Shown: positions 3,721-42,496, numbered from the stretch's first letter. The stretch: DNA of 47,079 nucleotides from Histomonas meleagridis 2922-C6/04-290x (GCA_020184695.1 JAANOX010000223.1:1-47079), one strand, 5' to 3'. Notes: a model not told the origin generated them from the letters alone. A program made the numbers and translations.

Positions 3721-4124
3721 CTTATTTTTGATTTGTTGTTTAATTAATTTATGCTTTATTGATGAATGGGTGATAAATAATAAATAACAAAGATAATTTA
3801 TGGAAAAAATATTTAAAAAATTATTAATAAAATTGAATTTTTGGTTCAAATAATACTTAATTTTTTCATTTTTTAAACAATGCTTAAAACTATTTATTGG
3901 CATGTAAAAATTTGCACCAAATGATAAATAACCTAGCATCCAAAACCTACCTTAGAAAAAAATGAATTACCATCATACTGTCTAAAAAACCAAACAAAAT
4001 AAATTTATCTTTTAAGAGTTGGTTCAGTCCTTTTTGGTTTTTGTAAGACGTGATTTTAACGGTCTCGAATTATTTTTCTTCTAACTAAAAATAAATTTTA
4101 TTATTGAATCAATTCGAAATTTTA

Positions 4125-4720
4125 TTGAGATTATAATGGAATGCTCCACAACCAAATGCGCCTAAAATGATATGGTCAACGTTATTCTAAATACAACATT
4201 GAAAAATTGTTTGAATACGTGAATCTCTCTATTAAGTTGATCAATATCGATACCTTTTCGAACGCTAAGATAATCAACAGCAGATGTAATAAGTGTTGCA
4301 AAAATTGGTTTGTCCAAAAGTGTAAAATCTAGTAATTTTTCCTTCAAATTGTACATTTGGACTGAAAATTAAGTAACTGGATGCTTCGCCTTTGGTATTA
4401 TATATGCTTTATTCATAAAATTCATTCTTTTGTATTAAGGAATAATTAATTTTATGAAAGTTGTCCTGGTATATAATCTTCTTGTGAACTTACTTTTCTT
4501 GTTATGGCTGGTACATTCATTGTAACAGGTGCATTGAATACTATTTGGAAGATTTCTCTGGTGACTGAATCAGACGAAAACTTTATTGAGTCGATGGTTT
4601 CTTGTAACGTTTAGATAACCTATTCAATTTTCGCTTTTTGAATGCGCCGATCATAGCTAAAGCGACCTGGTATTTTGTTTCACTAAATTTTTACTTGTCC
4701 TGGACTTTGCAAAACAAAAA
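4125..4720 (-). pseudogene. Degenerate microbial-type PARG (DUF2263/TIGR02452-like)
   Basis: Across frames: SSQEDYI ... YLIFSPNV ... LLDKPIFATLITSA ... RIQTILQCCI*NNVDHIILGAFGCGAFHYN, matching the order of family motifs QEE, IYSPxV, FITxAA, LGAWGCGAF. Several stops and frameshifts. Confidence 0.6.
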
Positions 4721-4959
4721 TGAACAATTCAGTTTATTCAATAAAAAATATTTTTCTTAAATAAAGAAAATGTTGCTCAAGTAGTTCTTTCAGTGTTTGA
4801 TATATTTGATAATAATTGTCAGTATTCATTAGTAAAATAATTTATTCACTATTTGTAGCAGGAATGAATAATTCAAAAGTCTATATGAATATCATTAAAG
4901 AAATAAAAAAAATTTGAAGATAACAAACAGATACAAAAAGAAAAATACATTAAGTTTTT

Positions 4960-5585
4960 CTTGAAAAATGATTTTGAAAATATGTTATCAAGAATCAAAT
5001 TATTTTCTTGAGAGAATGATTCAAGAAAATTTATGTGAATCGAACATAATTGAACAGGTGAGAGAAGAATCATATTTTATACCTTACATGTCCAAAAATT
5101 CCAGAAGAGAATGACTATTTGAAACCAAAAATGGGAAACATTAAAGAACTTTCAAAGAATGATTGGGAAATTAACAAGAAATTAATCAAAGAAAGTGTTA
5201 ATCCAAATGAAATTGCAAAAATAATAATTCGAAATGATGAAATAGAAAAACTTCAAGAAATATCATCACAACCAAATTTTGATTTTAATCAAACAATTGA
5301 ACCATCACTTTATGAAAGATGTTCATTTATTAATAAAAAAAATGTTTCATTAATTGATTATGCAGCATTTTTTTCTTCTATTAAATGTTTTAAATATTTA
5401 CGTATGAATAATGCAAATGTAAATAACACATGTAAACATGCAATTGCAGGTGGAAATGAAGAAATCATTCATCATTTGAGGATGCATATGAAATAGCAAT
5501 TGAATTCCATCGAAATGATATCTTCAAATACATACATGAAAATAAAATATGTCATATTAAAAAATCAGAAAAATTAAAAATTTAA
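4960..5585 (+). pseudogene. Trichomonad ankyrin-repeat/DUF3447-type protein fragment A
   Basis: NPNEIAKIIRNDEIEKLQE, SLIDYAAFFSSIKCFKYL, AIAGGNEEIIH, then AIEFHRNDIFKY in another frame. The frameshift after IIHHL is shared with the R copy. Confidence 0.7.
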
Positions 5586-5840
5586 AAAATGAAAAAATTC
5601 CAAAGATCTGGCTAGCAGATGCTCATTTGGGAAAGTATCTAATAACAACCCGCTCACCTCATGTTTTTGGTCTTTTCTTTTATCAATTATAATTTTTACA
5701 CGCATATTTTTATAGTTTTTTTAATATTAACACATTAACAAATTTTTTCAATCCCAATATTTTTTCTATTATACTCATTTCTTTTTTATAATTTTATATC
5801 TATATCTTAATAAGTTTATTTTAAAAATTTCTTATTGTTT

Positions 5841-5871
5841 GCTTCGCTTTGATCCGCAAACGGCGCGAAGC
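5841..5871. other. GC-rich two-tier hairpin GCTTCGC...GCGAAGC
   Basis: 7-bp inverted repeat (5841-5847/5865-5871) with an inner TTTG/CAAA stem, in an otherwise very AT-rich background. Mirrored at 39008-39038. Confidence 0.7.
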
Positions 5872-5992
5872 GCATTCTTGTTATGATAAGATTCTCAATT
5901 AAAATATCTAAAAATCAATCAGAAGAAATTCAAAAATGCATTATATTTGGAATAAATAGCTATATTATATTACCATATTATACAGAAACCTT

Positions 5993-6960
5993 TTGAAAAT
6001 GTTGAATCGAGGATACTCAAAATTTTATTATTTATCTTTCCCAAAAAGTGGTTTCAACTTGTTATTGATGAAACTCTCGAAATCATTAGAATCAATTGTC
6101 TTTAATTTAAACGAAAATAATTTAGAAACATCAGTTCAAGAAACAATTAATTTATTTGTTGATGTACTACCATATACATTTAACTATCTTGTTACCATAC
6201 TTATATTTCAGTATTTGTTTCTCAAGCTTATGATGAAAATACATATATTAAATATTTATTGATTTTAAATGCAAAAGAAGAAGAAGAAGAAGAAGAAAAA
6301 CCAAAGTAAAACTGAAGTTAATATTGTTCAAATATTTTGTAAATATTTACTGAAAATAAAAAAGCAAGAATCATATTTCCTTCTTGAAAAGATGATCGAA
6401 GAAGAAATAGGTGAACCATCTTCAGTAAAGAATGTGAACACATTATATTTTTCTCAATATAAAACAAAAGAAGAAATAAACAAATTAATGAACAAATGGG
6501 CAGAACCTCATAAATTATCAAAAAATGCTTGGAAATTTCATATGCAATATGTAAAAGAAGGAGTTAATCCATTAGAGGTTGCGAAATGATGATTTAGAAA
6601 AGCTTCAAGAAATATCATCACATAATGAATTTGACTTTAATCAAATAATTGAACCATCACTTTCTGAAAGATGTTCATTTGTTAATACTAAAAAAATGTT
6701 TCATTAATTGATTATTGTGCATTTTTTAGTTTGATTAAATGTTTTAAATATTTATTATCAAATAATTCTAATATTAAAAATACATCTAAATATGCAATTG
6801 CAGGTGGAAACTTAGAAATTATTTATTTATGAGAACAAAACAATTCATCATTTAAAGAAGCATCTGAAACAACGATCGAATTTCATCGAAATGAAATTTT
6901 TCGTTCTCTTTATGAAAATAAAATTAACATTTTTTTCCATACGTGCTTGCCACATTTTTA
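5993..6960 (+). pseudogene. Trichomonad ankyrin-repeat/DUF3447-type protein fragment B
   Basis: GVNPLEVAK, LIDYCAFF..IKCFKYLL, AIAGGNLEII, IEFHRNEIF in shifting frames, with an in-frame TGA at ~6830. Confidence 0.65.
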
Positions 6961-6997
6961 GAATTTCAGGTGGCAATGAAAGAGTTTAAGTATATAA

Positions 6998-9900
6998 GTG
7001 GTCCAAGAAAATTTAAAACGAGAATATCTCGAAAACGATCCATAGGTGTATAGTAAAAATTTAGTGACATTGCTTCTATTATGTGTAGAGTATAAATAAT
7101 TCAAAAAATCGAATTTAAAATCTTGATCATTCCATGCTGGCAGATGCGCATCTGTAATCTCAAAATGTTCATTTTCAATTATCTGTAAGAACAACATTTC
7201 TATGTAGCTAGTCATTCTATATATCGAGCATCAACATGATTCTTTCTCTCCTTTCATAAAAAATCAATAGATCAACTTGATTTACTTATAGAGAAAGATG
7301 TACCACTACAAATCGCTTAGCCACACCTATTAACGTAAACTATAAACCTAAGTCTAAACTATATATCAATGTTGAAATGTTTTCAACGTCCAATATCAAG
7401 AAAACTAATAACAAAATCATTTCATCATGTCTTTTAATATGTAACTAGAATAAAACTTCTATATTTTTTATAATTAATTGCATGCAATTGGATATCTTTT
7501 AGCATAAGTGTGAAGTTCACTGTTTATATATTCTAGGAAGATCAATTCACGGTAATAAAAATTAACAATCGAACACTGTGCTTTTTATGCAATAAAATCA
7601 CATAGAATGATACACCATCACTCTTTGATCAAATATATGTTATAAGCGTAGTGGCAAGTGAAGAAGATAGGTGCAAAAGCTTTTCTTTTCACTGCTTCTT
7701 AACGTATGAACGATAAGTCTTTCAATTCATAACGATCATGTCAAATCAATTTTAACAAATTTAATGAGCAAAAAAACAGAGAAAGCAACCCTTTCCAGGC
7801 AAATTGGTAGGCTAAAAAAGGATATTTCTAATCTTGAACAATCATTGGGGTACTACAAGAAAAGAACCCAGATACTCGAGAAAATAATAGAAGATCATGA
7901 TCCCACATTACTTCCACCAAGATCTTTCAAGGGTCAAAGGGAGTTCTATGAAGAATATTTGAGGAAATAAAAATCGGTTGACGAGCCCGTATACAAACCC
8001 ATACCTTTTGGGGAACAATTATCATTTGAATCACAGAACAATTCCAATCGTTTTCCTAAATCTCGGCAATGGAGTCCCAATGTAATTATATTTTGTTTCA
8101 TATTAAGAACTCTCAGAAGTAAGTGTTATGACTATCTTCGCTCCGTCATAACATTGCCATGTAAACAGACGCTGTACAATCACTTTAGCCATATTCAAAA
8201 TTCGTGGAAGGAGTGTTTAACCATATGTTCGGAAACAATCCGCATTATCAACCTATTTAGAAGAAGACATAACATTCAGTATTCTGAGAAAGTGGATATT
8301 GTTTTGGGTATAGATGCTATGTCAATGGAACCTGTTACAAAAGAAATTTATGATGCAAAGAGAGGGGACAATAATGCATTTTTAATACATTTACAACCTT
8401 TATCATGCAAGTATAAATGTCTTCCTTTACATGTGTTACCATACAAGAAGGGCAATGCAGATGAAGATGTCAGAATTCGGCTAAGATATCTTGCTGATTT
8501 TTTAGATGCAAATGGTTTCAATGTTCGCTGTATAGCAAGTGACGGTGATTCTGGATACTCTATAATTCATCGCGAACAGTTCAACAAGTGGTGGCCTATT
8601 TTTAGAAATAAGGGAATTGAAGATGCACTTGGGATTCTGCAGAATGATAGATTGATAATTGGCGACTTCTTACATCTATTGAAAAATGCTAGAAGCAGGA
8701 TATTGAATGGACAAATCTCAATATGTACAGACGGTAAGCTAGCCTTCACCGCGCTTGATATGGAAAAAGTACTACAGCTTGGAGCTCCATTAACAGACAC
8801 GTCACCAAAGGGAAGGATGAAGGATCATTATTGTTTGAAGATCTTTACTATGGAAAACTTCTTCCAATTGTTACATTCTAGCCACATTAACATGGCGTTT
8901 TACATACTTCCGTATGCTCTATGGTCACATGCTATTCGTAATTCATCGCTGTCACCTCAAACACGACTGGATTATCTTTGTTCTTTACTTGATATTTTTT
9001 TGCATATCATGCAAAAAACTTAGACAGGCTAACACCAAATGTACAACAAGTGAAACGTGGTCATGGTACGCAATATTGTTGTTCACTCAATCAATGCATT
9101 CGAATTATGAACACATTGATTGGTGTTTTGAGAGAGTTAAGAGCAAGGTCTGATGATCTGTGTCTGGAAAGATTGGGAACACATAATGTTGAATGTCAGT
9201 TTGGTTTAATACGTATTATGTGTCATAACAAACACAGCTGGGAAAAGATTATGAGTGCATTTTCACGTCTCACCTTAATGAATGATTTGACAACTGTGAT
9301 AGGTCGAAAGATCAACATAAGAACCAGGATGAATGTAGGTGGAGTGAAACTTACTGAAAAAGCAGGGCAATGTATTTGAGGAGTCACCCCAAGAGCTAAC
9401 TATGGAACAAGTGTTTGAGGCTGTTAATGTCGTCATGGAGAGACAAGCTGGAAGTGAAGATATACCATTTGAAACTGCTATTGAGTTATGCCCTGACCTG
9501 GCAGAGTTTGTGATGTGGTTGAATAGAATTCATGCTCAGTGGAAGGTGACAGGTGTTAGGTTGGAAGAAACCTACCAAGGAAGTCTAATCAGCAATTGTA
9601 CAATCTTAGCCAGACTCATTTCATTTTGCAAAAATGAGCCTATAAATGATGCAGACCTTGGAGATGAGGATACCAAAGAACAACAATCAGTAAGGCTGGA
9701 AGAAAATTTGTTTTGTGAGACAACCACACCTACCAGAAACGAATAATAAACGACCGTTTAAAGTATAAATTGGGAAAATCAAGCATGTTTTCACTTGTTT
9801 GAGTAACAAAGACACGATAACAGGAATAATGCTTTTTATAAACAGAATTAGAATATGAATTGAGAGTTGAAGAATAAAAAAAAAAAAAAAAATAAACAAA

Positions 9901-10031
9901 TTGCGATTTATTATCTTCCAAACCAACGTTCTCATATATGATATCAACATAACTATTTAACATACTGAGGTATTAGGTGAGATATTGCATGTTCTTTTTT
10001 ACTTTCCAAGTCATTTGGTGGGTTGGACCAC
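6998..10031 (+). mobile_element. P-element-superfamily DNA transposon (ends tentative)
   Basis: GC-richer ~3.0 kb block carrying a P-like transposase. Candidate ends are GTGGTCCAA (6998-7006) and TTGGACCAC (10023-10031), flanked by GTATATAA / GTATTTTA (6/8 match, possible decayed 8-bp TSD). Confidence 0.55.
7764..9746 (+). pseudogene. P-element/THAP9-like transposase (~660 codons when rejoined)
   Basis: Motifs WS..IIFCFILRTL..KCYDYLRSVITLPCKQTL, LGIDAMSM, IASDGDSG, GDFLHLLKNARSRIL, RMK..CLKIFT, LGTHNVECQFGLIR. In-frame TAA at 7968-7970 in both copies; frameshifts at ~9000 and ~9360 are homopolymer expansions absent from the R copy. Confidence 0.75.
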
Positions 10032-10281
10032 GTATTTTAAGTATTTTTATTTGAATGGGCATTACTGATTAATAAGTAAATTTGATTATTTAATGTGAAA
10101 TAAAGTTAATTAAAATCTTAGATAATTAAAATATCTTCATTATTTTTTATTATTATATGTTCAAAATCATTTTTTCTAAATTTAATTGTAATATAAGGAG
10201 TTATCAAAAGCGTTTTCGAATTTAATAATATATTGAAACGTTGAAGGTGTACACGTTTATTTACAAGTGGCCGTTTACGAA

Positions 10282-10988
10282 TCATTTCAATGGTTTTAAG
10301 CCCAAAAGCGCGCGGATACGATTTTCTTCTGCGATTTCATCAACAATAACAGGTTTCTCTTTTTTGTGTTTTTTCTTTGACTTGAACTTGAGCTTGCCTT
10401 TCAGTTTGAGTTTCTTTTTTTCTTCTATTTCTTCAAATAGTTGGCCATCAGGGGCCATTCCCATTTCTGCAAAAACTTCTTCACGAAGGGCTTCATTAAG
10501 ATGATTTAATGGTGAATGGCGTGGAGGCAATCCAACCCTTGGCGTAAGAGGAGGAAGTGAGACACCACACCAAAATTCATCATGAATAAACGAATGAATA
10601 ATCTCATCAAAAATGTGTAATTTGAAATTCATCATCACGAAGGATTGCTACTTGATTGTATTGCATAAGAAGTGGTTCAAGAACGATGTAAACTTCTTCT
10701 GGTGGAAATGTGAATCGAACATAAAGAGCTGCAAGCAAACGAAGATGTTTCATTTGCCAACAACGTGTGTTTAAGAAATATAAAATGATGTCTCTAGATG
10801 GTTCAAGTTCAAGAAGTTTGAGAAATAAGCACAAAAATTCACATGGAAGTTTAAGATGTCCATAAAGACCACCAACGCCTTTAATCATTTGTGCTCTATC
10901 AACAAAAACGACTAAATTAACACCAAAACAATATGTTTTGTATTGGGCTCCAAGAAGGATGAACATATTTACTTTTGCTTTCACTCAT
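10282..10988 (-). pseudogene. PRP38: PRP38 splicing factor, L copy with 89-bp deletion
   Basis: Matches 33882-34676 but lacks the segment equivalent to 33936-34024 (frameshifting; removes GTAPQHLL...YNSVYW). Also a +1 A at ~10610. Confidence 0.8.
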
Positions 10989-11091
10989 TTACAAAAATTT
11001 CTTGTCGCTTTTAATTGGTAATTGAATTGTTTACATTTCGTTCGTTATTTTATTCTTCTGGCAATTGTTGTGCAATCAAACGTGATTTTCT

Positions 11092-14000
11092 ATGAGGAAA
11101 AATGTTGTATCACTTGTCTTTTCACAACCTAATAGAATGAAGAAAGCAAATAGAAGATCTAAGCCAACAGCATATTCACAAAAATATTCACTTGTAAATC
11201 GAAAACCTCCAAAAATTTCATCACCAAATTCAGCCATATCAAGGCCAAGCAATTCAAAAAATAAACAAAAACAAAATATATCTCCAAAACAAACAAATAC
11301 AGTTATAAATTGTTATCAAGACATTTCTTTTGACACTGTTTTTGATAAAATGGTAGAAAATCTTCAAATAATGCCTCTTAGTGAATGTTTTGAAAAATTA
11401 TTAGAAGAAATATTTAAAACGAAATATGTAATTTTTTGGGAAATTTCATCAACAGAAATATTTTCAGCAACGCACAAGAAAAAAATTCCAAAAGATGACT
11501 CTATATTATGGCGAGTATCCGAGCTTAAAGAATTTCTTTTTATAAAGAATATAGAAAGCGAAGAAGCATTTAATCACACAGAAGCTGATACATTTTTTAT
11601 TCCAAAGAATTATTCAATACTTTACATACCCGTTTTATATGATTCCAAAGAAAACCAATTTATTTTTCAAATTGGTAAACCAGAAGAAGACTTTGTTGAA
11701 GAAGATTTCCAAAACTTAGATAAATTTTTAGCTAAGATTTCAATATATGGTGATTTTCTATTTCAACGTAAATCATTATTACAAATTTCATCGGAATTAG
11801 TTAATCCACATCAAAGTTCCAATTTTTTTTGTAATAAACTTATTGAATATTTTCATTCACGTTCAGCCGAATTTTATTGTTATAGACCGAAAACTAATCA
11901 AATCTTTCAAATCACTAAAGATTCGACAACAAATTCAGGCGAAATATTATCAACAGATAAAATTGGGTTTATATCATATTCATTTAAAACGCAAAAAATT
12001 ATAAATGAAGAACATATTTCTAATGTTCCATCATATAACAAAGAAGTTGATGGTGAAGAAGATGAATCAATCTTAGCAATACCATATAAAGATGAAAGTG
12101 AACAATTATGGTGTTTTGTATTGCGAAGAAAAAAACGATTTTCATACATGAGTGAAATAATATTTTCAGTTTTTATACCATTCATAGTTCGAACGATTAC
12201 ATTTGTAGTATCACCACCACAACTTGAAATGCAACTTGATAATTTTGAGAAAAGACTTAAAGCATTACTTGAAGTTGCCGAAATTTTAAAGTGGTGTACT
12301 TGATATTGATGTACTTTTTACCTACTATTATGGATCGAGCATGTAAATTATTAGATGCAGAACGTTGTTCATTATTTTTAGTCGATGCAACACATAATGA
12401 ATTAGTTACACGTTTTCATGGCGGATTAGAAAAATGCGATTCATGTTAAAAATAGGAAGAGGTATTGTTGGTATATGTGCACAATCAGGTGAAACAGTTA
12501 ATATTCGTGATGCTTATGCAGATCAACGATTCGATCGATCAGTCGATATAGCAACAGGCTTTATGACACGTACATTATTATGTATACCGATTTATAATAA
12601 CAGAGGTGAAATTACAGGTGTTACCGAAATGATTAATAAGAAGAATGACGGACATTTTGATGAAGATGATGAGAAAATGCTTATGGCGTTTAATGTATTT
12701 TGTGGTATTTCACTTGATAATGCACGATTATATAAAGCATCATTAGATTTAACAAAACAATTACGTACATTTATCCAAATGTCAGTAGCTATAAATAGTA
12801 CAATTTCACTCGAAAATACACTCGATGGGATTATGATGAATATCCAAAGTATAGTTAATGCTTCAAGAGTTACTGTGTTTTTAAATAATGAAAACGAAAA
12901 TAATTTATATGAATATCATACTATAGGTACACCTTCAACTTATGGTACTGTTTTTGCTGAAGAAACAGTACAAAATAGAAAATTCATGTTATTTGATCAT
13001 CATGAAGTTTTAGGGAGAGCACAAACACAACAATTAAATAAGGCAATTGAAAAAATATTAGCTGCAGGATTAGATGCAGATATAATGGTCTTTGGTGATG
13101 AAGATGGATATTATATTGAAGAAGAAGAGGAAGAAGAATATTTACAATATGAAGATGATGAATTTTCTCGTATTTATCCCGAAAGTTCTAAAATTAGTAC
13201 ACAACATTCACGAACAATGAATTCTAATAATAATAATAATAATAATACGTCATCACATAACTCTACAAATGTATTTGATTCACAAGTTACAAATAAAATT
13301 AATGCGGACGAAAATACAGAAGTTATTTGTTGTATTCCTTTATTTAGTTCCGAATCTACAATTCTTGGCGTTATTGAGTTTTCTTGTAATTGGAAAGTTA
13401 TGGGCGAAGATATTAAATTACTTGATTGCTTTTCAGTATTCGCAAGTGTTTCTATTGAAAGATCACAACTTAAAGAAAAGAGCAAAGTTTGGCGAAATTG
13501 AAGTCGAATTAAAAAATTGGATAACAGAACGAGAACGAACTTTAACCAATAAAATTCCAAGTAAACTTATGATATCAATGGATAAACTTACTCAAGTTTT
13601 ATTGGTACAATTCGATGCGCCTGAATGGGATGGAATTGGATATGTTAAAGTATTGTTTTCGATTTTCGATATTTTCGATTTAATGAATCACTTTTAATAT
13701 TACAAATGAAAAATTATTTCGTTTTATATTTGAAATTAGAAATACATATCGTAAAGTTCCTTATCATAATTGGCGTCATGCAGTTGATGTCACACAATTT
13801 ACTACATTCCAAATACTTACAGGTGGTCTCGATACAGTTCTTACTAAATTTGAAATTCTCGGATTAATAGTTTCCGCTATATGTCATGACGCTGATCATG
13901 ATGGGTTTAATAATGCATTTAATATTAAAGCCGAAACGCCACTTGGGATTTTATTTAAGAACCAAAGTGTTTTAGAAACTCATCATTGTTCAGTAGCGAT

Positions 14001-14523
14001 TAATGTTATCTCTAAAGATGAATGTAATCTTTTTCATTCATTATCACCTGTTGAAAACAAAAACATGTGGTCATTAATCATCTCATTAATATTAGCAACT
14101 GATATGGCAAAGCATTTCGATATATTAAAAGAATTCGATAACATTTTCTCGGAAGGTAAATTTACTATGAATGATTCACATTGTAGAAATCTGTTGTTAC
14201 AATTAATTTTAAAGTGTAGCGACGTATCAAATGTTGCGCGACCGTTTCAATTGGCTGATAAATGGAGCGAAGTTCTTTGCGAAGAATTTTTTCGTCAAGG
14301 AGACTTGGAGAAAGCACGCGGAATGGAATATACGTCTGACCTAAATGATAGAGCGCACCTTGATAAGCCAAAAAGTCAAATTGGATTTTATACTTTCGTT
14401 TGTTTGCCTTTGTTTCAAGCAGTAGCTAAAGCTGTGCCGAAGCTTGAATGCAATGTTCAACAATTGAATTCAAATCTTGAAAAGTGGAAAGAAGCAAAGA
14501 AACAAGAAAATCAAAAAGAATAA
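11092..14523 (+). CDS. GAF-domain class I cyclic-nucleotide phosphodiesterase (~1141 aa), probably intact
   Basis: GAF (LDAERCSLFLVD, GRGIVG..A..GE.VNI.DAY.D.RFDR.VD..TGF.TR.LLC.PI) and PDEase_I motifs YHNWRHAVDV, CHDADHDGFNN, ILATDMAKHF, LKCSDVSN, EEFFRQGD, QIGF. Six +1 homopolymer insertions (~12287, 12316, 12432, 12447, 13486, 13693), judged against the R and M copies, restore a single frame. Confidence 0.85.
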
Positions 14524-14820
14524 ATGTATGAATAAAATGTTTCTATATATTAAATTTTTATTTTGATTTGATATAAGTTATTAGTATGTGAAGACAGCAT
14601 GCTGTCTATCCTTAATTAAACTTAAGTCTAGACTTGAATCATTTGAAATCATTTAGTAAAGTATTGATTTCACACGAATTTTGTGTTGCTCTAACTTCTT
14701 GAAATAATCAAGGACTTACATAAAAAATCAAACTATTGAAAATAACACGTAAAGGCATCTTTCTTTCGAAATATTTTTTAGGTCACAATTATTATTGCTT
14801 CTTTGAACAATATGATCTCG

Positions 14821-15837: not shown

Positions 15838-16371
15838 AAGATAGAGAGATAAAACATTTGGAGAATTAAAAGTAACAAAAGATACAATCGAAGGATGTAC
15901 TTTGAATCCAACACCAACATTTACACCAAATGAAACAAATTCATTTTCACATACAAATGATGATAATTAAGTAATCCTCTCAAAAAAATTTGATTAAGAT
16001 AATTTTGTTGTTCACCCATGATCAAAAATTTTATTGAATAAAACATCAAAATTATCCCTAACCTTTGCATTTTATTTTATTGATTATTATTATTATTATT
16101 ATTATTTGAAATGTTCTAAATTGAATTAAATCACTTTTAATCACCAAAACCTTTCTTAATTTTCTTCTGATTACTCTCTGATAATTTTAATCTTCATTTC
16201 GGATATTAAATATTCCTTGTATAACTAGCTTTCAATGTTATAATTTTTTTATCTATTTTATTTTTCGAAATATTAGTGTGAATTATATTTTGTATCAGTG
16301 AATAAAATAAATTAAATGAATTTTTTATAAGCTTTTGATATGATATATGCTAATACCAGGATTATAAATAA

Positions 16372-16645
16372 TATATTATTACTATTATATATATTATTAC
16401 TATTATATATATTATTACTATTATATATATTATTACGATTATATATATTATTACGATTATATATATTATTACGATTATATATATTATTACGATTATATAT
16501 ATTATTACGATTATATATATTATTACGATTATATATATTATTACGATTATATATATTATTACGATTATATATATTATTACGATTATATATATTATTACGA
16601 TTATATATATTATTACGATTATATATATTATTACGATTATATATT
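16372..16645. repeat. 18-bp AT-rich minisatellite, ~15 copies (ATTATATATATTATTAC[T/G])
   Basis: 3 ACT-type units followed by 12 ACG-type units; source of the spurious NIYNRN, LLRLYI and IIVIIY ORFs. Confidence 0.95.
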
Positions 16646-16799
16646 GTGTTGCAATAGATGATACTGAATACACCAATAGATTTCATTATCCCTTTTTACC
16701 CTTTTATGTATATGATGAGAATAACAAAAAAATAATTTTAAAAAACCATCGAGTTTTAACTTCCTTTAATATCTGATAATTATGAATTTTTTATTTTTG

Positions 16800-19128: not shown

Positions 19129-20272
<1,144 letters not shown>

Positions 20273-30107: not shown

Positions 30108-30413
30108 TGAGATCATATTGTTCAAAGAAGCAATAATAATTGTTACCTAAAAAATATTTCGAAAGAAAGATGCCTTTATGTGTTATTTTCAATAGTTTGA
30201 TTTTTTATGTAAGTCCTTGATTATTTCAAGAAGTTAAAGCAACACAAAATTCGTGTGAAATCAATACTTTACAAAATGATGGTCATGATTTCAAATGATT
30301 CAAGTCTAGACTTAAGTTTAATTAAGGATAGACAGCATGCTGTTTTCACATACTAATAACTTATATCAAATCAAAATAAAAATTTAATATATAGAAACAT
30401 TTTATTCATACAT

Positions 30414-33400: not shown

Positions 33401-33778
33401 CTGAAAATATTTCTGTTGATGAAATTTCCCAAAAAATTACATATTTCGTTTTAAATATTTCTTCTAATAATTTTTCAAAACATTCACTAAGAGGCATTAT
33501 TTGAAGATTTTCTACCATTTTATCAAAAACAGTGTCAAAAGAAATGTCTTGATAACAATTTATAACTGTATTTGTTTGTTTTGGAGATATATTTTGTTTT
33601 TTTGTTTATTTTTTGAATTGCTTGGCCTTGATATGGCTGAATTTGGTGATGAAATTTTTGGAGGTTTTCGATTTACAAGTGAATATTTTTGTGAATATGC
33701 TGTTGGCTTAGATCTTCTATTTGCTTTCTTCATTCTATTAGGTTGTGAAAAGACAAGTGATACAACATTTTTCCTCAT
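30414..33778 (-). pseudogene. GAF-PDE, R copy with 77-bp deletion
   Basis: Lacks the segment equivalent to L 11733-11809 (junction at ~33136), which shifts the frame. Additional homopolymer indels and poly-T garbling at 30875 and 31625. Confidence 0.75.
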
Positions 33779-33881
33779 AGAAAATCACGTTTGATTGCAC
33801 AACAATTGCCAGAAGAATAAAATAACGAACGAAATGTAAACAATTCAATTACCAATTAAAAGCGACAAGAAATTTTTGTAA

Positions 33882-34676
33882 ATGAGTGAAAGCAAAAGTA
33901 AATATGTTCATCCTTCTTGGAGCCCAATACAAAACTATAAGAAAAGTGTTAGAGGCACAGCACCTCAACATTTGCTTGACCCAAAAACTAGACACAAAAT
34001 TTATAATTCAGTGTATTGGCTTCAATATTGTTTTGGTGTTAATTTAGTCGTTTTTGTTGATAGAGCACAAATGATTAAAGGCGTTGGTGGTCTTTATGGA
34101 CATCTTAAACTTCCATGTGAATTTTTGTGCTTATTTCTCAAACTTCTTGAACTTGAACCATCTAGAGACATCATTTTATATTTCTTAAACACACGTTGTT
34201 GGCAAATGAAACATCTTCGTTTGCTTGCAGCTCTTTATGTTCGATTCACATTTCCACCAGAAGAAGTTTACATCGTTCTTGAACCACTTCTTATGCAATA
34301 CAATCAAGTAGCAATCCTTCGTGATGATGAATTTCAAATTACACATTTTGATGAGATTATTCATTCGTTTATTCATGATGAATTTTGGTGTGGTGTCTCA
34401 CTTCCTCCTCTTACGCCAAGGGTTGGATTGCCTCCACGCCATTCACCATTAAATCATCTTAATGAAGCCCTTCGTGAAGAAGTTTTTGCAGAAATGGGAA
34501 TGGCCCCTGATGGCCAACTATTTGAAGAAATAGAAGAAAAAAAGAAACTCAAACTGAAAGGCAAGCTCAAGTTCAAGTCAAAGAAAAAACACAAAAAAGA
34601 GAAACCTGTTATTGTTGATGAAATCGCAGAAGAAAATCGTATCCGCGCGCTTTTGGGCTTAAAACCATTGAAATGA
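33882..34676 (+). CDS. PRP38: Pre-mRNA splicing factor PRP38 (264 aa), intact
   Basis: GTAPQHLL...IYNSVYW..YCFG, GGLYG...PCEFLCLFLKLLELEP, LRLLAALYVR, LEPLL, HFDEII match the PRP38 domain. C-terminal EIAEENRIRALLGLKPLK. Confidence 0.9.
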   Translation: MSESKSKYVHPSWSPIQNYKKSVRGTAPQHLLDPKTRHKIYNSVYWLQYCFGVNLVVFVDRAQMIKGVGGLYGHLKLPCEFLCLFLKLLELEPSRDIILYFLNTRCWQMKHLRLLAALYVRFTFPPEEVYIVLEPLLMQYNQVAILRDDEFQITHFDEIIHSFIHDEFWCGVSLPPLTPRVGLPPRHSPLNHLNEALREEVFAEMGMAPDGQLFEEIEEKKKLKLKGKLKFKSKKKHKKEKPVIVDEIAEENRIRALLGLKPLK

Positions 34677-34927
34677 TTCGTAAACGGCCACTTGTAAATA
34701 AACGTGTACACCTTCAACGTTTCAATATATTATTAAATTCGAAAACGCTTTTGATAACTCCTTATATTACAATTAAATTTAGAAAAAATGATTTTGAACA
34801 TATAATAATAAAAAAATAATGAAGATATTTTAATTATCTAAGATTTTAATTAACTTTATTTCACATTAAATAATCAAATTTACTTATTAATCAGTAATGC
34901 CCATTCAAATAAAAATACTTAAAATAC

Positions 34928-37879
34928 GTGGTCCAACCCACCAAATGACTTGGAAAGTAAAAAAGGACATGCAATATCTCACCTAATACCTCAGTATGTT
35001 AAATAGTTATGTTGATATCATATATGAGAACGTTGGTTTGGAAGATAATAAATCGCAATTTGTTTATTTTTTTCAACTCTCAATTCATATTCTAATTCTG
35101 TTTATAAAAAGCATTATTCCTGTTATCGTGTCTTTGTTACTCAAACAAGTGAAAACATGCTTGATTTTCCCAATTTATACTTTAAACGGTCGTTTATTAT
35201 TCGTTTCTGGTAGGTGTGGTTGTCTCACAAAACAAATTTTCTTTCAGCCTTACTGATTGTTGTTCTTTGGTATCCTCATCTCCAAGGTCTGCATCATTTA
35301 TAGGCTCATTTTTGCAAAATGAAATGAGTCTGGCTAAGATTGTACAATTGCTGATTAGACTTCCTTGGTAGGTTTCTTCCAACCTAACACCTGTCACCTT
35401 CCACTGAGCATTAATTCTATTCAACCACATCACAAACTCTGCCAGGTCAGGGCATAACTCAATAGCAGTTTCAAATGGTATATCTTCACTTCCAGCTTGT
35501 CTCTCCATGACGACATTAACAGCCTCAAACACTTGTTCCATAGTTAGCTCTTGGGGTGACTCCTCAAATACATTGCCCTGCTTTTCAGTAAGTTTCACTC
35601 CACCTACATTCATCCTGGTTCTTATGTTGATCTTTTCGACCTATCACAGTTGTCAAATCATTCATTAAGGTGAGACGTGAAAATGCACTCATAATCTTTT
35701 CCCAGCTGTGTTTGTTATGACACATAATACGTATTAAACCAAACTGACATTCAACATTATGTGTTCCCAATCTTTCCAGACACAGATCATCAGACCTTGC
35801 TCTTAACTCTCTCAAAACACCAATCAATGTGTTCATAATTCGAATGCATTGATTGAGTGAACAACAATATTGCGTACCATGACCACGTTTCACTTGTTGT
35901 ACATTTGGTGTTAGCCTGTCTAAGTTTTTTGCATGATATGCAAAAATATCAAGTAAAGAACAAAGATAATCCAGTCGTGTTTGAGGTGACAGCGATGAAT
36001 TACGAATAGCATGTGACCATAGAGCATACGGAAGTATGTAAAACGCCATGTTAATGTGGCTAGAATGTAACAATTGGAAGAAGTTTTCCATAGTAAAGAT
36101 CTTCAAAACAATAATGATCCTTCATCCTTCCCTTTGGTGACGTGTCTGTTAATGGAGCTCCAAGCTGTAGTACTTTTTCCATATCAAGCGCGGTGAAGGC
36201 TAGCTTACCGTCTGTACATATTGAGATTTGTCCATTCAATATCCTGCTTCTAGCATTTTTCAATAGATGTAAGAAGTCGCCAATTATCAATCTATCATTC
36301 TGCAGAATCCCAAGTGCATCTTCAATTCCCTTATTTCTAAAAATAGGCCACCACTTGTTGAACTGTTCGCGATGAATTATAGAGTATCCAGAATCACCGT
36401 CACTTGCTATACAGCGAACATTGAAACCATTTGCATCTAAAAAATCAGCAAGATATCTTAGCCGAATTCTGATAAAGGTTGTAAATGTATTAAAAATGCA
36501 TTATTGTCCCCTCTCTTTGCATCATAAATTTCTTTTGTAACAGGTTCCATTGACATAGCATCTATACCCAAAACAATATCCACTTTCTCAGAATACTGAA
36601 TGTTATGTCTTCTTCTAAATAGGTTGATAATGCGGATTGTTTCCGAACATATGGTTAAACACTCCTTCCACGAATTTTGAATATGGCTAAAGTGATTGTA
36701 CAGCGTCTGTTTACATGGCAAATGTTATGACGGAGCGAAGATAGTCATAACACTTACTTCTGTGAGTTCTTAATATGTATCAAAATATATTTACATTGTG
36801 ACTCCATTTCCGAGATGTAGGAAAACGAGTGGAATTGTGCTGTGATTCAAATGATAATTGTTCCCCAAAAGGTATGGGTTTGTATACGGGCTCGTCAACC
36901 GATTTTTATTTCCTCAAATATTCTTCATAGAACTCCCTTTGACCCTTAAAAGATCTTGGTGGAAGTAATGTGGGATCATGATCTTCTATTATTTTATCGA
37001 GTATCTGGGTTCTTTTCTTGTAGTACCCCAATGATTGTTCAAGATTAGAAATATCCTTTTTTAGCCTACCAATTTGCCTGGAAAGGGTTGCTTTCTCTGT
37101 TTTTTTGCTCATTAAATTTGTTAAAATTGATTTGACATGATCGTTATGAATTGAAAGACTTATCGTTCATACGTTAAGAAGCAGTGAAAAGAAAAGCTTT
37201 TGCACCTATCTTCTTCACTTGCCACTACGCTTATAACATATATTTGATCAAAGAGTGATGGTGTATCATTCTATGTAATTTTATTGCATAAAAAGCACAG
37301 TGTTCGATTGTTAATTTTTATTACCGTGAATTGATCTTCCTTGAATATATAAACTGTGAACTTCACACTTATGCTAAAAGATATCCAATTGCATGCAATT
37401 AATTATAAAAATATAGAAGTTTTATTCTAGTTACATATTAAAAGACATGATGAAATGATTTTGTTATTAGTTTTCTTGATATTGGACGTTGAAAACATTT
37501 CAACATTGATATATAGTTTAGACTTAGGTTTATAGTTTACGTTAATAGGTGTGGCTAAGCGATTTGTAGTGGTACATCTTTCTCTATAAGTAAATCAAGT
37601 TGATCTATTGATTTTTCATGAAAGGAGAGAAAGAATCATGTTGATGCTTGATATATAGAATGACTAGCTACATAGAAATGTTGTTCTTACAGATAATTGA
37701 AAATGAACATTTTGAGATTACAGATGCGCATCTGCCAGCATGGAATGATCAAGATTTTAAATTCGATTTTTTGAATTATTTATACTCTACACATAATAGA
37801 AGCAATGTCACTAAATTTTTACTATACACCTATGGATCGTTTTCGAGATATTCTCGTTTTAAATTTTTTCTTGGACCAC
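34928..37879 (-). mobile_element. P-element-like transposon, R copy (67-bp deletion in transposase)
   Basis: Mirror of 6998-10031. Deletion of L 8406-8472 between TCA microhomologies (junction ~36470). Confidence 0.6.
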
Positions 37880-37949
37880 TTATATACTTAAACTCTTTCA
37901 TTGCCACCTGAAATTCTAAAAATGTGGCAAGAAAAAAAAAAAAAAAAAT

Positions 37950-38886
37950 GTTAATTTTATTTTCATAAAGAGAACGAAAAATTTCATTTCGATGAAATTC
38001 GATCGTTGTTTCAGATGCTTCTTTAAATGATGAATTGTTTTGTTCTCATAAATAAATAATTTCTAAGTTTCCACCTGCAATTGCATATTTAGATGTATTT
38101 TTTTAATATTAGAATTATTTGATAATAAATATTTAAAAACATTTAATCAAACTAAAAATGCACAATAATCAATTAATGAAACATTTTTTTAGTATTAACA
38201 AATGAACATCTTTCAGAAAGTGATGGTTCAATTATTTGATTAAAGTCAAATTCATTATGTGATGATATTTCTTGAAGCTTTTCTAAATCATCATTTCGCA
38301 ACCTCTAATGGATTAACTCCTTCTTTTTACATATTGCATATGAAATTTCCAAGCATTTTTGATAATTTATGAGGTTCTGTCCATATGTTCATTAATTTGT
38401 TTATTTCTTCTCTTCTGTTATATTGAGAAAAATATAATGTGTTCACATTCTTTACTGAAGATGGTTCACCTATTTCTTCTTCGATCATCTTTTCAAGAAG
38501 GAAATATGATTCTTGCTTTTTTATTTTCAGTAAATATTTACAAAATATTTGAACAATATTAACTTCAGTTTTACTTTGGTTTTTTTTTTCTTTTTCTTCT
38601 TCTTTTGCATTTAAAATCAATAAATATTTAATATATGTATTTTCATCATTAGCTTGAGAAACAAATGCTGAAATATAAGTATGGTAACAAGATAGTTAAA
38701 TGTATATGGTAGTACATCAACAAATAAATTAATTGTTTCTTGAACTGATGTTTCTAAATTATTTTCGTTTAAATTAAAGACAATTGATTCTAATGATTTC
38801 GAGAGTTTCATCAATAACAAGTTGAAACCACTTTTTGGGAAAGATAAATAATAAAATTTTGAGTATCCTCGATTCAACATTTTCAA
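37950..38886 (-). pseudogene. Ankyrin/DUF3447-type fragment B, R copy
   Basis: Reverse complement of ~5993-6930. Confidence 0.65.
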
Positions 38887-39078
38887 AAGGTTTCTTTATA
38901 ATATGGTAATATAATATAGCTATTTATTCCAAATATAATGCATTTTTGAATTTCTTCTGATTGATTTTTAGATATTTTAATTGAGAATCTTATCATAACA
39001 AGAATGCGCTTCGCGCCGTTTGCGGATCAAAGCGAAGCAAACAATAAGAAATTTTTAAAATAAACTTATTAAGATATA

Positions 39079-40362
39079 TAGGGGGGTCCAAAAGTTCGTG
39101 TAATCCCCTTTATTTCAATGAGTAAACATTACTGTAATTTTATATTTAATATATAATATTCATAAAGTGTTCTATAATTTATTTATGTATTAATTTGAGT
39201 TTTATCAATTGTGAATCGAAATATTCACATTTTGAAAACGATAGCGACCGTTTGAGTCCACTTATGAACCAGGAATTTCGGTCGGTATATCGTTATTGTT
39301 ATCTTAGAGGATTATCTCCAAGAGAAGCACATGAAGAAATGATACGAGCATATGGAGAAGATTGTCCTCATGAAAATACTATAAGAAAATAATTTAAAAG
39401 ATTTGAAGAAGGCTCAGAATCACTTGATGACGAACACCGTACAGGGAGACCTAAAAATACCTCATTAGTTCCAAAAGTGCAGGATCTTTTAATGAACTAT
39501 CCATTTTTATCAGCAAAAGCTATTGCCAATATGTTGGGCGCTCCTAAGACAACAATTCTTAGGGTTTTACATGATAAAATGGGTTATGTGAAGTTGAATT
39601 TTCGATGGATCCCCCATCAACTCAATGATGATCAAAAAGCCGATAGGGTTCAGGCTGCACACGAAATGTTAGAAATTCTCAGAAACAATAAAAACCCCTA
39701 GTGCAACATAATTACAGGTGATGAAACATGGATATATCGGGAAAACAACAATACAAGTCAATGGCTTCCAATTGGAAGCAAAAGGCCAGAAATTCCCAAA
39801 AGAATTATGACGGTTAACAAAACGATGATTAGCGTATACTTAAGTACGGCAGGGATTATCTTAATAGATCCTTTACCAAATAATATAAAATTTAGTGCAC
39901 AGTATATGATACAAGGTATACTTCAAAAGTTAAATAATAATATAAAACAAAGAAGAAAAATGTCGGGAGTTTCAGGTTGTTTATTACATATCGACAATGC
40001 ACCGTCACACAACGCGACCGTTACTTCCGACGAGATCCAAAAATTAGGCATTAGAAGAATGTCTCACCCTGCTTATTCACAAGATATTGCTCCTTGTGAC
40101 TTTTGGCTATTCGGTGTTGTGAAAGAACGGATCAAAGGCTACACATTCAATAACGAGAACGAATTAATTCAAAAAATTTCGGAAATTCTCAATGGAATTT
40201 CAACACAAGAAATTGAAGATGTATATGAAGAATGGTGCCGCCGTCTCGAATGGGTTATTAATAACAAAGGGGAGTACTATACAAATTAATAAAAAGATTT
40301 TTTATATCTTGTTTATTTATTGAGAAAAAAAGTTGAATTACACGAACTTTTGGACCCCCCTA
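39079..40362 (+). mobile_element. Mariner (DD34D) transposon, 1284 bp, 26-bp TIRs, TA TSD
   Basis: TIR TAGGGGGGTCCAAAAGTTCGTGTAAT at 39079-39104 and its inverse at 40337-40362. TA at 39077-78 and 40363-64. The empty site (AAGATA-TA-GATATA) is present in L at ~5795-5808. Confidence 0.97.
39264..40289 (+). pseudogene. Mariner transposase (341 codons) with two in-frame stops
   Basis: Single frame: HTH (RTGRP), RWIPHQL, ITGDETW, HIDNAPSH, YSQDIAPCDFWLF with 34 residues between the last two Asp. TAA at 39390 and TAG at 39699. Confidence 0.93.
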
Positions 40363-40589
40363 TAGATATAAAATTATAAAAAAGATATGAGTATAATAGA
40401 AAAATATTGGGATTGAAAAAATTTGTTAATGTGTTAATATTAAAAAAACTATAAAAATATGCGTGTAAAAATTATAATTGATAAAAGAAAAGACCAAAAA
40501 AACATGAGGTGAGCGGGTTGTTATTAGATACTTTCCCAAATGAGCATCTGCTAGCCAGATCTTTGGAATTTTTTCATTTTTTAAATTTT

Positions 40590-41200
40590 TAATTTTTCTA
40601 ATTTTTTAATATGACATATTTTATTTTCATGTATGTATTTGAAGATATCATTTCGATGGAATTCAATTGCTATTTCATATGCATCCTCAAATGATGAATG
40701 ATTTCTTCATTTCCACCTGCAATTGCATGTTTACATGTGTTATTTACATTTTGCATTATTCATACGTAAATATTTAAAACATTTAATAGAAGAAAAATGC
40801 TGCATAATCAATTAATGAAACATATTAATAAATGAACATCTTTCATAAAGTGATGGTTCAATTGTTTGATTAAAATCAAAAATTTGGTTGTGATGATATT
40901 TCTTGAAGTTTTTTTCTATTTCATCATTTCGAATTATTTTTGCAATTTCATTTGGATTAACACTTTCTTTGATTAATTTCTTGTTAATTTCCCAATCATT
41001 CTTTGAAAGTTCTTTAATGTTTCCCATTTTTGGTTTCAAATAGTCATTCTCTTCTGGAATTTTTGGACATGTAAGTATAAAATATGATTCTTCTCTCACC
41101 TGTTCAATTATGTTCGATTCACATAAATTTTCTTGAATCATTCTCTCGAGAAAATAATTTGATTCTTGATAACATATTTTCAAAATCATTTTTCAAGAAA
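40590..41200 (-). pseudogene. Ankyrin/DUF3447-type fragment A, R copy
   Basis: Reverse complement of ~4960-5585. Confidence 0.65.
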
Positions 41201-41449
41201 ACTTTATGTATTTTACTTTGTATCTGTTTGTTATCTTCAATTTTTTTTTATTTCTTTAATGATATTCATATAGACTTTTGAATTATTCATTCCTGCTACA
41301 AATAATGAATAAATTATTTTTAATAATTAATACTGACAATTATTATCAAATATATCAAACACTGAAAGAACTACTTGAGCAACATTTTCTTTATTTAAGA
41401 AAAATATTTTTTATTGAATAAACTGAATTGTTCATTTTTGTTTTGCAAA

Positions 41450-42030
41450 GTCCAGGACAAGTAAAAATTTAGTGAAACAAAATACCAGGTCGCTTTAGCT
41501 ATGATCGGCGCATTCAAAAAGCGAAAATTGAATAGGTTATCTAAACGTTACAAGCAACCATCGACTCAATAAAGTTTTCGTCTGATTCAGTCACCAGAGA
41601 AATCTTCCAAATAGTATTCAATGCACCTGTTACAATGAATGTACCAGCCATAACAAGAAAAGTAAGTTCACAAGAAGATTATATACCAGGACAACTTTCA
41701 TAAAATTAATTATTACTTAATACAAAAGAATGAATTTTATGAATACAGCATACATAATACCAAAGGCGAAGCATCCAGTTACTTAATTTTCAGTCCAAAT
41801 GTACAATTTGAAGGAAAAATTATTAGATTTTACACTTTTGGACAAACCAATTTTTGCAACACTTATTACATCTGCTGTTGATTATCTTAGCGTTCGAAAA
41901 GGTATCGATATTGATCAACTTAATAGAGAGATTCTCGTATTCAAACAATTCTTCAATGTTGTATTTAGAATAACGTTGACCATATCATTTTAGGCGCATT
42001 TGGTTGTGGAGCATTCCATTATAATCTCAA
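41450..42030 (+). pseudogene. Degenerate microbial-type PARG (DUF2263-like), R copy
   Basis: DHIILGAFGCGAFHYN at 41978-42025, LIFSPNV at ~41783, SSQEDYI at ~41665. Confidence 0.6.
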
Positions 42031-42496
42031 TAAAATTTCGGATAATTTAAAGAAATGAGTTGTATTAAATGAAGAGACAAACATCAAACAACTAAAGGCT
42101 GTAACAAATGAGTAAGTGAGTGTTAGTGAACAAAATATTGCACTTAATTAATAAATTGAAATCATTTAAAGAAATTAACTGTATTGAATGTTAAGATAAA
42201 CATCAAATGAATAAGTAGGTTGTATTAAATGGATAAATGATTTCCAAATTCTCAAATGATTTTGAGAGTCGCAGACTCAAAAAGCTCTATCGGTTTGCTG
42301 TGGTGCTCCAAGATTTACATAAAAGAATTATTAATAAATAAAATCAAATAAGTTTCCTTGATATAGCATACCGAATTTGTCAAACTTCAAATCAAAAATA
42401 AAATTTTATTTAAAACTTTCAATAAATTATCAAAAAAAATTATAATGAAAAACATTCCGAATAATTTTGTTGTTTTATTCAATGAAAAGGGTATTT

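Follow-up and report, generated by a model that had tools for sequence, protein, structure and literature searches.

Inverted copies of a 12-kb block ending in BspA genes in Histomonas meleagridis: a probable case of duplication, decay and past sequence exchange

The poultry parasite Histomonas meleagridis carries two mirror-image copies of a 12-kb block of ordinary genes and transposons, each terminated by a gene for a BspA surface protein. Does such a locus shuffle surface antigens by recombination, as a preliminary description proposed, or does it reflect duplication followed by decay? The window analysed here is the entire 47-kb contig C223, which we searched against the genome (43,133,364 bp in 281 contigs). 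This assembly of an attenuated strain was generated from ONT reads with Flye in --meta mode and three rounds of racon, and a genome duplication of 20% was reported for it (PMC8529796).

Arms, partial copy and flanks

Self-BLAST, repeat search and alignment delimited arm L (4101-16257, plus strand) and arm R (28350-42054, minus strand). The segments 4115-15958 of L and 42040-28969 of R match in collinear blocks of 96.5-99.4% identity. The outer limit of homology lies at 4101/42054, and beyond a 480-bp indel at the inner side the two arms match weakly up to 16101 in L and 28350 in R, whereas L matches other copies, namely M (see below) and those of contig C129, as far as 16257. The global alignment contains 170 substitutions over 11,652 aligned bases (1.46%, hence 98.5% identity), and 13 kb separate the arms. 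The near-identical inverted arms announced by the preliminary description thus exist, and the locus has the form of a palindrome, with long, highly similar arms around a spacer.

Divergence is unevenly distributed along the arms, with 5 substitutions in 4235 positions in the centre, 49 in 4178 in the outer part, 28 in 1978 in the phosphodiesterase gene and 88 in 1261 in BspA. A central tract of 4.4 kb is therefore nearly identical (0.1% divergence), while BspA is the most diverged segment (7%). The alignment also includes seven larger indels, the largest of which (1,286 bp) is present in R only, and 48 indels of at most 3 bp. As 40 of those 48 sit in homopolymers of at least four nucleotides, many of the frame breaks may reflect ONT errors left uncorrected. 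In multi-copy sequence, polishing with short reads could likewise introduce or remove some substitution patterns.

Each arm contains two DNA transposon sites, a PRP38 splicing-factor gene, a phosphodiesterase gene with GAF and PDEase_I domains and, at the inner end, an LRR_5 (BspA) gene. The BspA gene of L (14821-15970, plus strand) has a signal-peptide-like start followed by LRR_5 repeats, and its frame breaks near 15837-15845. That of R (28477-30107, minus strand) shares its start and upstream sequence with that of L and continues with LRR_5 repeats, a Ser-rich stalk, a hydrophobic transmembrane helix (IYIGVGVAVGVVVFAALIIVLIIYI) and a short tail, with a single frame break in an A-run within the overlap 29838-29886. 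The 480 bp that code for stalk, anchor and tail are missing from L, from M and from both C129 copies, with a 5-nt microhomology at the junction. Two earlier observations are therefore correct: different BspA genes lie behind the same phosphodiesterase and upstream context, and the product of R is membrane-anchored while that of L is anchor-less.

The LRR_5 matches are strong (E-values of 3e-64 for L, 2.5e-32 for a partial ORF of R and 1.6e-42 for M), and the BspA family is characterised by LRR_5 repeats, to which a C-terminal transmembrane helix and short tail may or may not be added. All assembled BspA copies of this cassette family are interrupted in frame. Of the genes broken by frameshifts only, some could be whole in the living parasite, above all the BspA gene of R. 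The dN/dS ratio between L and R is 1.1-1.2; a value near 1 is also compatible with diversifying selection mixed with constraint. To the left of the arms lies an intact BspA gene (2107-3939, minus strand; 610 aa, LRR_5 E-value 2e-66) that is unique to this contig, its other matches in the genome being at most 75% identical.

The partial copy M (20242-23135, minus strand) consists of the 3' two-thirds of the phosphodiesterase gene fused to a start-less BspA gene, with several frame breaks. A 430-bp deletion corresponding to 14497-14926 of L has removed the BspA start and its upstream region. M is a mosaic, as had been noticed: it is R-like up to the equivalent of position 15223 of L and L-like from 15262, and a maximum chi-square test places the breakpoint between these positions, with a value not attained in any of 5000 permutations. 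M had also been said to look like the product of a crossover within BspA, but a reciprocal crossover cannot make a third copy.

L and M form an inner palindrome around a 2.7-kb spacer, S1 (16258-18975), which is built of dispersed repeats and includes an 18-bp tandem repeat (16371-16644), a 218-aa ORF without family and a BspA fragment (18411-18884, minus strand). The 3' flank of M contains an (AAT)n microsatellite of ~383 units (19129-20276), the counterpart of which in L (about 16080-16106) is a short ATT run. Between M and R, segment U (23136-28349) comprises a dispersed repeat (23136-24506) with a perfect 45-bp hairpin (24208-24300) and a truncated, frame-broken copy (24506-28163) of genes that are intact on contig C11, with 95-96% identity. 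The junction between M and U shows a 6-nt microhomology.

Flank B (42055-45101), which contains a BspA stalk/transmembrane fragment (42497-43234, minus strand), is joined to the cassette in R, in C129 and partly in C86, and therefore belongs to the duplicated unit. Near the contig end, an ORF (46067-46969, plus strand) matches the profile of the packaging ATPase-like Pox_A32 family and is probably part of a Maverick/Polinton-type element. Beyond C223, two short contigs, C129 and C86, carry the block joined differently to its surroundings. Besides L, R and the C129 cassette, partial copies are M, a second one in C129 (C129s) and those of C86, C109 and C188. The cassette drawn in the preliminary description thus holds as to the reality of its copies, but the unit is larger and also present elsewhere. 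The junctions of L with the left flank (4101) and of M with U (23135) occur in C223 only.

Gene decay and marks of exchange

PRP38 genes are found at three loci in the whole 43-Mb assembly, all within this cassette family, and the R copy (33882-34676, plus strand) is the only intact one detected, with a 264-aa ORF and a PF03371 match at 1e-41. The L copy (10282-10984, minus strand) is 89 bp shorter and split into two ORFs, and about 222 bp are deleted from that of C129. The phosphodiesterase gene of L (11092-14523, plus strand; GAF 7e-17, PDEase_I 2e-44) is broken into at least four ORF pieces, and that of R (30414-33518, minus strand) into at least seven. The latter lacks 77 bp that are present in L and also missing from C129. 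On large contigs, the open frames of phosphodiesterase paralogues span 859-1248 aa. The gene-breaking deletions are thus complementary: L and C129 have lost part of PRP38, R and C129 part of the phosphodiesterase gene, and L, M and C129 the BspA anchor. ONT errors cannot explain deletions of 89, ~222, 77, 480 and 430 bp.

The two transposons serve as markers of the copies. A P-element-like element of 3.05 kb is present in L (6994-10035) and in R (about 34924-37892), with an 8-bp target duplication (TTAAGTAT) and short inverted ends (GTGGTCCAA/TTGGACCAC), and its site is cleanly empty in C129. At least six further copies with 96-97% identity are found on other contigs. The 421-aa ORF of one P-like copy (L017) resembles THAP9/TNP-like transposases, at a high similarity score, by Atlas features only and has no Pfam match. 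The second element, Tc1/mariner-like (39078-40363; 1,286 bp), is present in R and C129; it has ~30-bp terminal inverted repeats, is flanked by a TA target duplication, and its site is cleanly empty in L and C86. Its transposase remnant scores weakly (PF01359, E-value 0.004, below the Pfam cut-off). A distance of 1.2 kb separates the insertion sites of the two elements, and each of the four combinations of presence and absence exists once the ancestral state with neither element is counted, which requires recombination between copies.

Private variants are also common to partner arms: C129f and C129s share seven sites, including an in-frame stop codon, and L and M share three. Past exchange among the copies is real, as the mosaic M, the incompatible transposon markers, the near-identical 4.4-kb tract and the shared private variants all point to it. 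Uneven divergence, mosaics and incompatible markers, the expected signs of exchange, were all found. The recombination part of the initial proposal thus stands as to past exchange among copies and is unsupported as to a switching cassette.

Origin of the locus

We consider a recent inverted segmental duplication, followed by independent decay and by ectopic recombination or gene conversion, to be the best reading, and a probable one. 'Segmental duplication plus decay', the other option of the preliminary description, fits the complementary deletions, the transposons in the arms, the dN/dS ratio of about 1 and the position of the block within a larger patchwork of shortened duplicates on three short contigs. 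We infer the order of events, taking the contig to represent one physical molecule. The ancestral block would have comprised flank B, the outer repeats, PRP38, the GAF-phosphodiesterase gene and BspA, in that order. Illegitimate recombination associated with microhomologies would have duplicated it repeatedly within a repeat-rich cluster of BspA genes and transposons. Each copy has since decayed on its own, through deletions of 67-480 bp (presumably microhomology-associated, given the 1-6-nt microhomologies at their junctions) as well as through transposon insertions and microsatellite expansion. Selection appears to keep only one intact PRP38 gene, that of R. The mosaics and the locally homogenised tracts would stem from homologous recombination or gene conversion of the usual kind among the copies. 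BspA would lie at the inner ends simply where the duplicated block happens to stop, and any reshuffling of BspA would be a by-product of recombination between paralogues rather than the work of a dedicated switch.

It is rather unlikely that the locus is an assembly artefact or a set of unresolved haplotypes or population variants. C223, C129 and C86 would then represent one or two real loci, traversed in different ways or present as different alleles, and the inverted linkage of L and R would result from Flye joining similar repeats or from chimeric ONT reads. All three contigs are indeed short (47, 33 and 21 kb, for an N50 of 314 kb), the --meta mode was used, and the predominance of homopolymer indels suggests poor polishing. 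PRP38, normally a single-copy gene, is present three times on these contigs only, and two of the junctions, at 4101 and 23135, are confined to C223. However, clean transposon insertions and deletions of 67-480 bp separate L, R and C129, which must therefore derive from no fewer than three different DNA molecules or loci. The arrangement of cassette, S1 and inverted BspA was recovered in two contigs independently, C223 and C129, and the junction of R with flank B was seen three times. The 13 kb between the arms are non-palindromic, unlike a fold-back read chimera, and the microhomology between M and U also argues against a misjoin.

That the locus functions in BspA diversification, with recombination between inverted paralogues generating anchored or released chimeras and M, which has no promoter, serving as silent donor, is improbable. 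The BspA genes do converge on the spacer, so that a crossover inside them would swap their 3' ends, and M is a significant mosaic and start-less like the silent donor cassettes of other pathogens. The variants private to partner arms are consistent with this idea. C129 has exactly the topology that a flipped isomer would show, with flank B and an outer end resembling R attached to an L-like inner end, and this would accommodate real inversion events. However, C129 is no simple isomer, since it lacks the P-like transposon and has deletions of its own and ~100 private differences, and, as noted for M, a third copy cannot come from a reciprocal crossover. BspA being the least similar part of the arms, exchanges are expected elsewhere, and most crossovers would leave the two genes inverted but otherwise unaltered. 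The two genes have identical upstream sequence, so that exchange turns nothing on or off. In addition, the neighbouring housekeeping-type genes of the arms decay likewise, and the dN/dS ratio of about 1 also speaks against such a function.

The stronger proposal of a dedicated recombinational switching cassette lacks support: neither a recombinase gene nor defined crossover sites were found, and no copy is intact as assembled. Pfam scans of ~40 ORFs across C223 yielded no recombinase gene, the only transposase traces being the weak mariner remnant and the P-like ORF. Short defined crossover sites that alter expression were not found, the repeats being the ~12-kb arms themselves. Silent-donor systems of the VSG, vlsE or pilS type have an intact expressed copy, whereas no copy here is uninterrupted as assembled, although ONT errors may account for part of the breaks. 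No feature singles the locus out as a switch dedicated to surface antigens.

Comparison with known systems

The ampliconic palindromes of the primate Y chromosome are large inverted duplications with arm-to-arm gene conversion. The locus resembles them in its inverted arms of >10 kb around a unique spacer, in the 0.1% divergence over 4.4 kb, in derived variants common to both arms and in the multicopy genes inside the arms. In contrast, the H. meleagridis arms are less uniform (1.5% divergence overall and 7% in BspA), they have arm-specific transposons and deletions, most of their genes are broken, and their structure is known from a single ONT contig.

Hin/Gin-type invertases, the R64 shufflon and Mycoplasma vsa combine short defined sites, a dedicated site-specific recombinase encoded nearby and one expressed 5' end. 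As in these systems, inverted repeats flank a segment that, on inverting, would swap the 3' portions of genes for surface proteins. Unlike them, the repeats consist of 12 kb of ordinary genes and transposons with no recombinase gene found, and each BspA gene has its own identical upstream region. We know of no switching mechanism described for BspA proteins.

In Trichomonas vaginalis, massive duplication of gene families was accompanied by pseudogene formation and occasional gene conversion, with phosphodiesterase and BspA pseudogenes tabulated and direct as well as indirect evidence for conversion between paralogues (Cui et al. 2010, PMC2914791). The H. meleagridis copies similarly look like recent parabasalid duplicates, with many stop codons, frameshifts and truncations. 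In T. vaginalis mostly coding regions alone were duplicated (PMC2914791), whereas here an inverted multigene block of 12-15 kb was copied with its flanks. The TvBspA-like proteins have an LRR_5/TpLRR ectodomain, and their frequent pseudogenes were proposed, as a speculation that would favour diversification, to be a reservoir for recombination (Noel et al. 2010, PMC2843621). Like these proteins and the BspA proteins of H. meleagridis (Palmieri et al. 2021, PMC8529796), the copies described here include members with and without a single C-terminal transmembrane helix and short tail. Unlike in known BspA proteins, the anchor-less form can be traced to a specific 480-bp deletion, and no copy is intact as assembled.

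Finally, the nested palindrome might be real, with BspA exchange ongoing during growth or infection, M acting as a donor and C129 being a flipped or recombined derivative, to yield anchored or released chimeras. We regard this combination as very unlikely. To our knowledge, recombination-based variation of a surface adhesin family has not been described for any parabasalid. If it were true, and if inverted BspA pairs recur in the genome, H. meleagridis would vary its surface adhesin family by recombination.

Layout of the arms and related contigs

Contig C223 makes up the window in its entirety (47,079 bp). Its inverted arms L (4101-15958, + strand) and R (42054-28969, − strand) align as collinear blocks of 96.5-99.4% identity, which bears out the inverted duplication reported in the preliminary description. 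A global alignment yields 170 substitutions over 11,652 aligned bases (1.46%). Most of the small indels (≤3 bp; 40 of 48) fall in homopolymer runs of four or more, and homopolymer indels are the Nanopore error type. The seven larger indels of this alignment measure 7, 9, 16, 67, 77, 89 and 1,286 bp.

From the outside inwards, the arms contain dispersed repeats; a Tc1/mariner-like element of 1,286 bp with ~30-bp inverted ends and a TA duplication, present in R and not in L; a 3.05-kb P-like element with an 8-bp target duplication (TTAAGTAT) in both arms; a PRP38 splicing-factor gene on the opposite strand; a GAF-phosphodiesterase (PDE) gene; and, innermost, a BspA (LRR_5) gene. The likeness of the 3.05-kb element to P-element/THAP9 transposases comes from an ORF of another of its copies, as seen in Atlas features only. 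With contents made of repeats, transposons, PRP38, PDE and BspA, the cassette is an ordinary stretch of genome rather than a dedicated unit.

The third copy, M (23135-20242, − strand), faces L across the 2.7-kb spacer S1; it is partial and carries a 430-bp deletion. S1 is composed of dispersed repeats. Just inside it, at 16371-16644, lies an AT-rich 18-bp tandem repeat of 15 units with 99% identity. About a dozen 18-bp-spaced matches to this repeat are found in the PDE region of contig C129 (10679-10915), between stretches matching L 13225 and 13247, where L and R have no sequence. The 3' flank of M harbours a pure (AAT)n tract of ~383 units (19129-20276), whose counterpart in L (~16080-16106) is a short ATT run; the tract has either expanded greatly or been given a false length by Nanopore sequencing. 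In segment U, between M and R, positions 24506-28163 are a truncated, frame-broken copy of genes of contig C11 (95-96% identity), whose source stretch (L020) has intact ORFs of 666, 155 and 843 aa. A perfect hairpin with a 45-bp stem and a 3-nt loop (24208-24300) is located within a dispersed repeat and also occurs at G000:C86:11662-11754. Because the matches listed for this repeat elsewhere in the genome fall into two parts that flank the 93-bp stretch, the hairpin may be a palindromic insertion.

Related arrangements were found on other contigs of the same assembly (43,133,364 bp, 281 contigs). C129 (32.7 kb) carries, besides S1 and a short copy of BspA, a complete cassette in inverted orientation that adjoins flank B, the sequence to the right of R. 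On C86 (21 kb), U is joined to the outermost 1.7 kb of the cassette and flank B. Flank B therefore belongs to the duplicated unit, being attached to the cassette on both of these contigs as well, and the outer end of the arms (4101/42054) is simply the stopping point of the L copy. At this boundary L resembles the C86 version. A comparison of G000:C86:17095-17215 with positions 4040-4160 of the window revealed a short tandem duplication at the boundary on C86 (CGAAATTTTATT ... CGAAATTTTATT); as the homology of L reaches into it, the outer end of L looks derived from a C86-like copy. More modules consisting of the PDE 3' part and BspA are present on C109 and C188.

Altogether, C223 is pieced together from duplicated fragments. 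Junctions 4101 and 23135 are found on no other contig of the assembly, so that the linkage of L and R on one molecule is putative. A Pox_A32-type packaging-ATPase ORF at the contig end (46067-46969) suggests a Maverick/Polinton-like element. The terminus itself (47020-47079) consists of a (CA)n run and then 35 bp of unusually high GC content, and the end of C86 is similar. At the left end, a 453-bp tandem repeat of BspA-like coding sequence (51-879; 1.8 copies, 78% identity) shares 96% identity over its first 229 bp with a BspA fragment of the spacer (18695-18921). Telomere repeats are absent from C223, C129 and C86, and Rfam and tRNA scans gave no match. The 610-aa flank BspA, the 403-aa PDE piece, the BspA of R and the spacer ORF have no exact protein matches; a word-indexed protein search retrieved only relatives of ≤43% identity for the BspA of R.

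Exchange between the copies

The two transposons provide markers of exchange. R and C129 contain the mariner-like insertion, whereas the corresponding sites of L and C86 are cleanly empty. The P-like insertion lies 1.2 kb from it; this second element is shared by the two arms, and C129 has a clean empty site. Once the ancestral empty state is counted, the four possible combinations are all represented, so the copies must have exchanged sequence or been repaired from an empty one. Polishing cannot generate such a pattern.

Divergence between L and R also varies by region, with 5 differences over 4,235 positions in the centre (8314-12717), 49/4,178 in the outer part, 28/1,978 in PDE and 88/1,261 in BspA. 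Up to the L-equivalent position 15223, most informative sites of M agree with R; from 15262 onwards, 128 of 132 agree with L. The maximum chi-square value was exceeded in none of 5,000 permutations, and the mosaic is in line with a separate preliminary note on 21088-21127. The partners of the inner palindromes have private variants in common, at seven sites for the full and short copies of C129 and at three for L and M, as would be expected of arm-to-arm conversion. Trees of PDE and BspA segments including the C86, C109 and C188 paralogues are mostly without resolved groupings; in PDE, M clusters with R and C109, and in the 3' part of BspA, R is separate from the other copies. They do not single out M, L or R as the recombinant. 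Past recombination among the copies is well supported by the transposon markers, the uneven divergence, the mosaic M and the private variants.

Structure and decay of the genes

The BspA genes of L and R have a common start (MNMKF...) and common upstream sequence. The R gene goes on to encode a stalk rich in Ser, a clearly recognisable hydrophobic helix and a short tail of basic character. Precisely the 480 bp coding for these features are missing, with CAAAT microhomology at the junction, from L, M and the two C129 copies, whose last codons are identical to those of R. The contrast first drawn between an anchored R and an anchor-less L protein is thus correct at the DNA level. None of the copies has an uninterrupted BspA ORF in the assembly. 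The frame of R is broken within an A-run (ORF overlap 29838-29886) and that of L near 15837-15845; in M, the frame is broken at several points, and the start and upstream region are gone. The inverted C129 copies (8688-9363 and 3072-3650) have a common in-frame stop (…AFYYE*TLL…), which fits conversion between palindrome arms once the gene was already broken. Sequencing error may account for the breaks located in homopolymers but not for the deletions. For L-type versus R-type LRR regions, dN/dS is 1.1-1.2, which gives no sign of constraint, and mixed diversifying selection would give a similar value. In the whole genome, a first look yielded 4,374 BspA candidates, of which the best 150 were scored.

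Gene-breaking deletions differ from copy to copy, with 1-6 nt of microhomology at their junctions. PRP38 lacks 89 bp in L and ~222 bp in C129, PDE lacks 77 bp in R and C129, and the P-like element lacks 67 bp in R. A Pfam-profile search for PRP38 (PF03371) across the 43-Mb assembly identified three loci only, all in the cassette family: R 33882-34676 (+), L 10282-10984 (−) and G000:C129:12890-13081. The R copy alone has a complete ORF (264 aa), which covers the domain. The 89-bp difference is not an intron, since its ends are not intron-like and both the ORF of R and its Pfam match span it. The only intact PRP38 of the assembly, a splicing factor expected to be single-copy, thus lies in a duplicated region that is poorly resolved. 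Large contigs carry PDE paralogues with open frames of 859-1248 aa, whereas all cassette copies are fragmented.

Published figures for the genome of the attenuated H. meleagridis strain, a Flye --meta assembly of Nanopore reads polished in three racon rounds using Illumina reads, are a base accuracy of 99.79% and a duplication level of 20% (Palmieri et al. 2021, PMC8529796). Pseudogenes defined by frameshifts only may be errors. As small, repeat-rich contigs of this ONT assembly contain many homopolymer frameshifts, pseudogene calls need read support.

Interpretation of the locus

The locus has the behaviour expected of a palindrome or inverted segmental duplication with gene conversion. Segmental duplication plus decay, offered in the preliminary description as the alternative to switching, is upheld by the gene-breaking deletions of the copies and by the patchwork contig. 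The first-named proposal there, a recombinational BspA switching cassette, is unsupported: there is no recombinase gene among the ~40 ORFs scanned, and exchange would alter no expression state because both BspA genes share their upstream sequence. Homologous exchange would favour the near-identical 4.4-kb centre, and a crossover there would flip both BspA genes unchanged. Nor does M fit as the product of a BspA crossover, as a reciprocal event between L and R makes chimeras of L and R and adds no third copy.

The topology of C129 is that expected of a flipped isomer of C223, with an L-like inner end and an R-like outer end bearing the mariner element and flank B. A simple flip is rejected: the P-like transposon that L and R both have is missing from C129, M differs from the short BspA copy there, and deletions of its own and ~100 private sites further set C129 apart. 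C129 is a separate paralogue or allele. A fold-back read artefact joining L and R is rejected, the arms being 13 kb apart and differing in transposons and deletions.

Inverted segmental duplication with conversion and decay matches what has been described for gene families of Trichomonas, where duplication goes together with the formation of pseudogenes (PMC2914791). BspA pseudogenes have already been speculated to be a recombination source of diversity (Noel et al. 2010, PMC2843621); the locus provides a concrete example of a BspA mosaic, and any function for it would be hypothetical. If BspA exchange were ongoing and the genes functional, this would be relevant to surface variation in this poultry pathogen. 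The locus provides a clear local example of parabasalid gene-copy gain and loss, in which inverted block duplication, microhomology-flanked deletions, transposon insertions and paralogue exchange are all on show.
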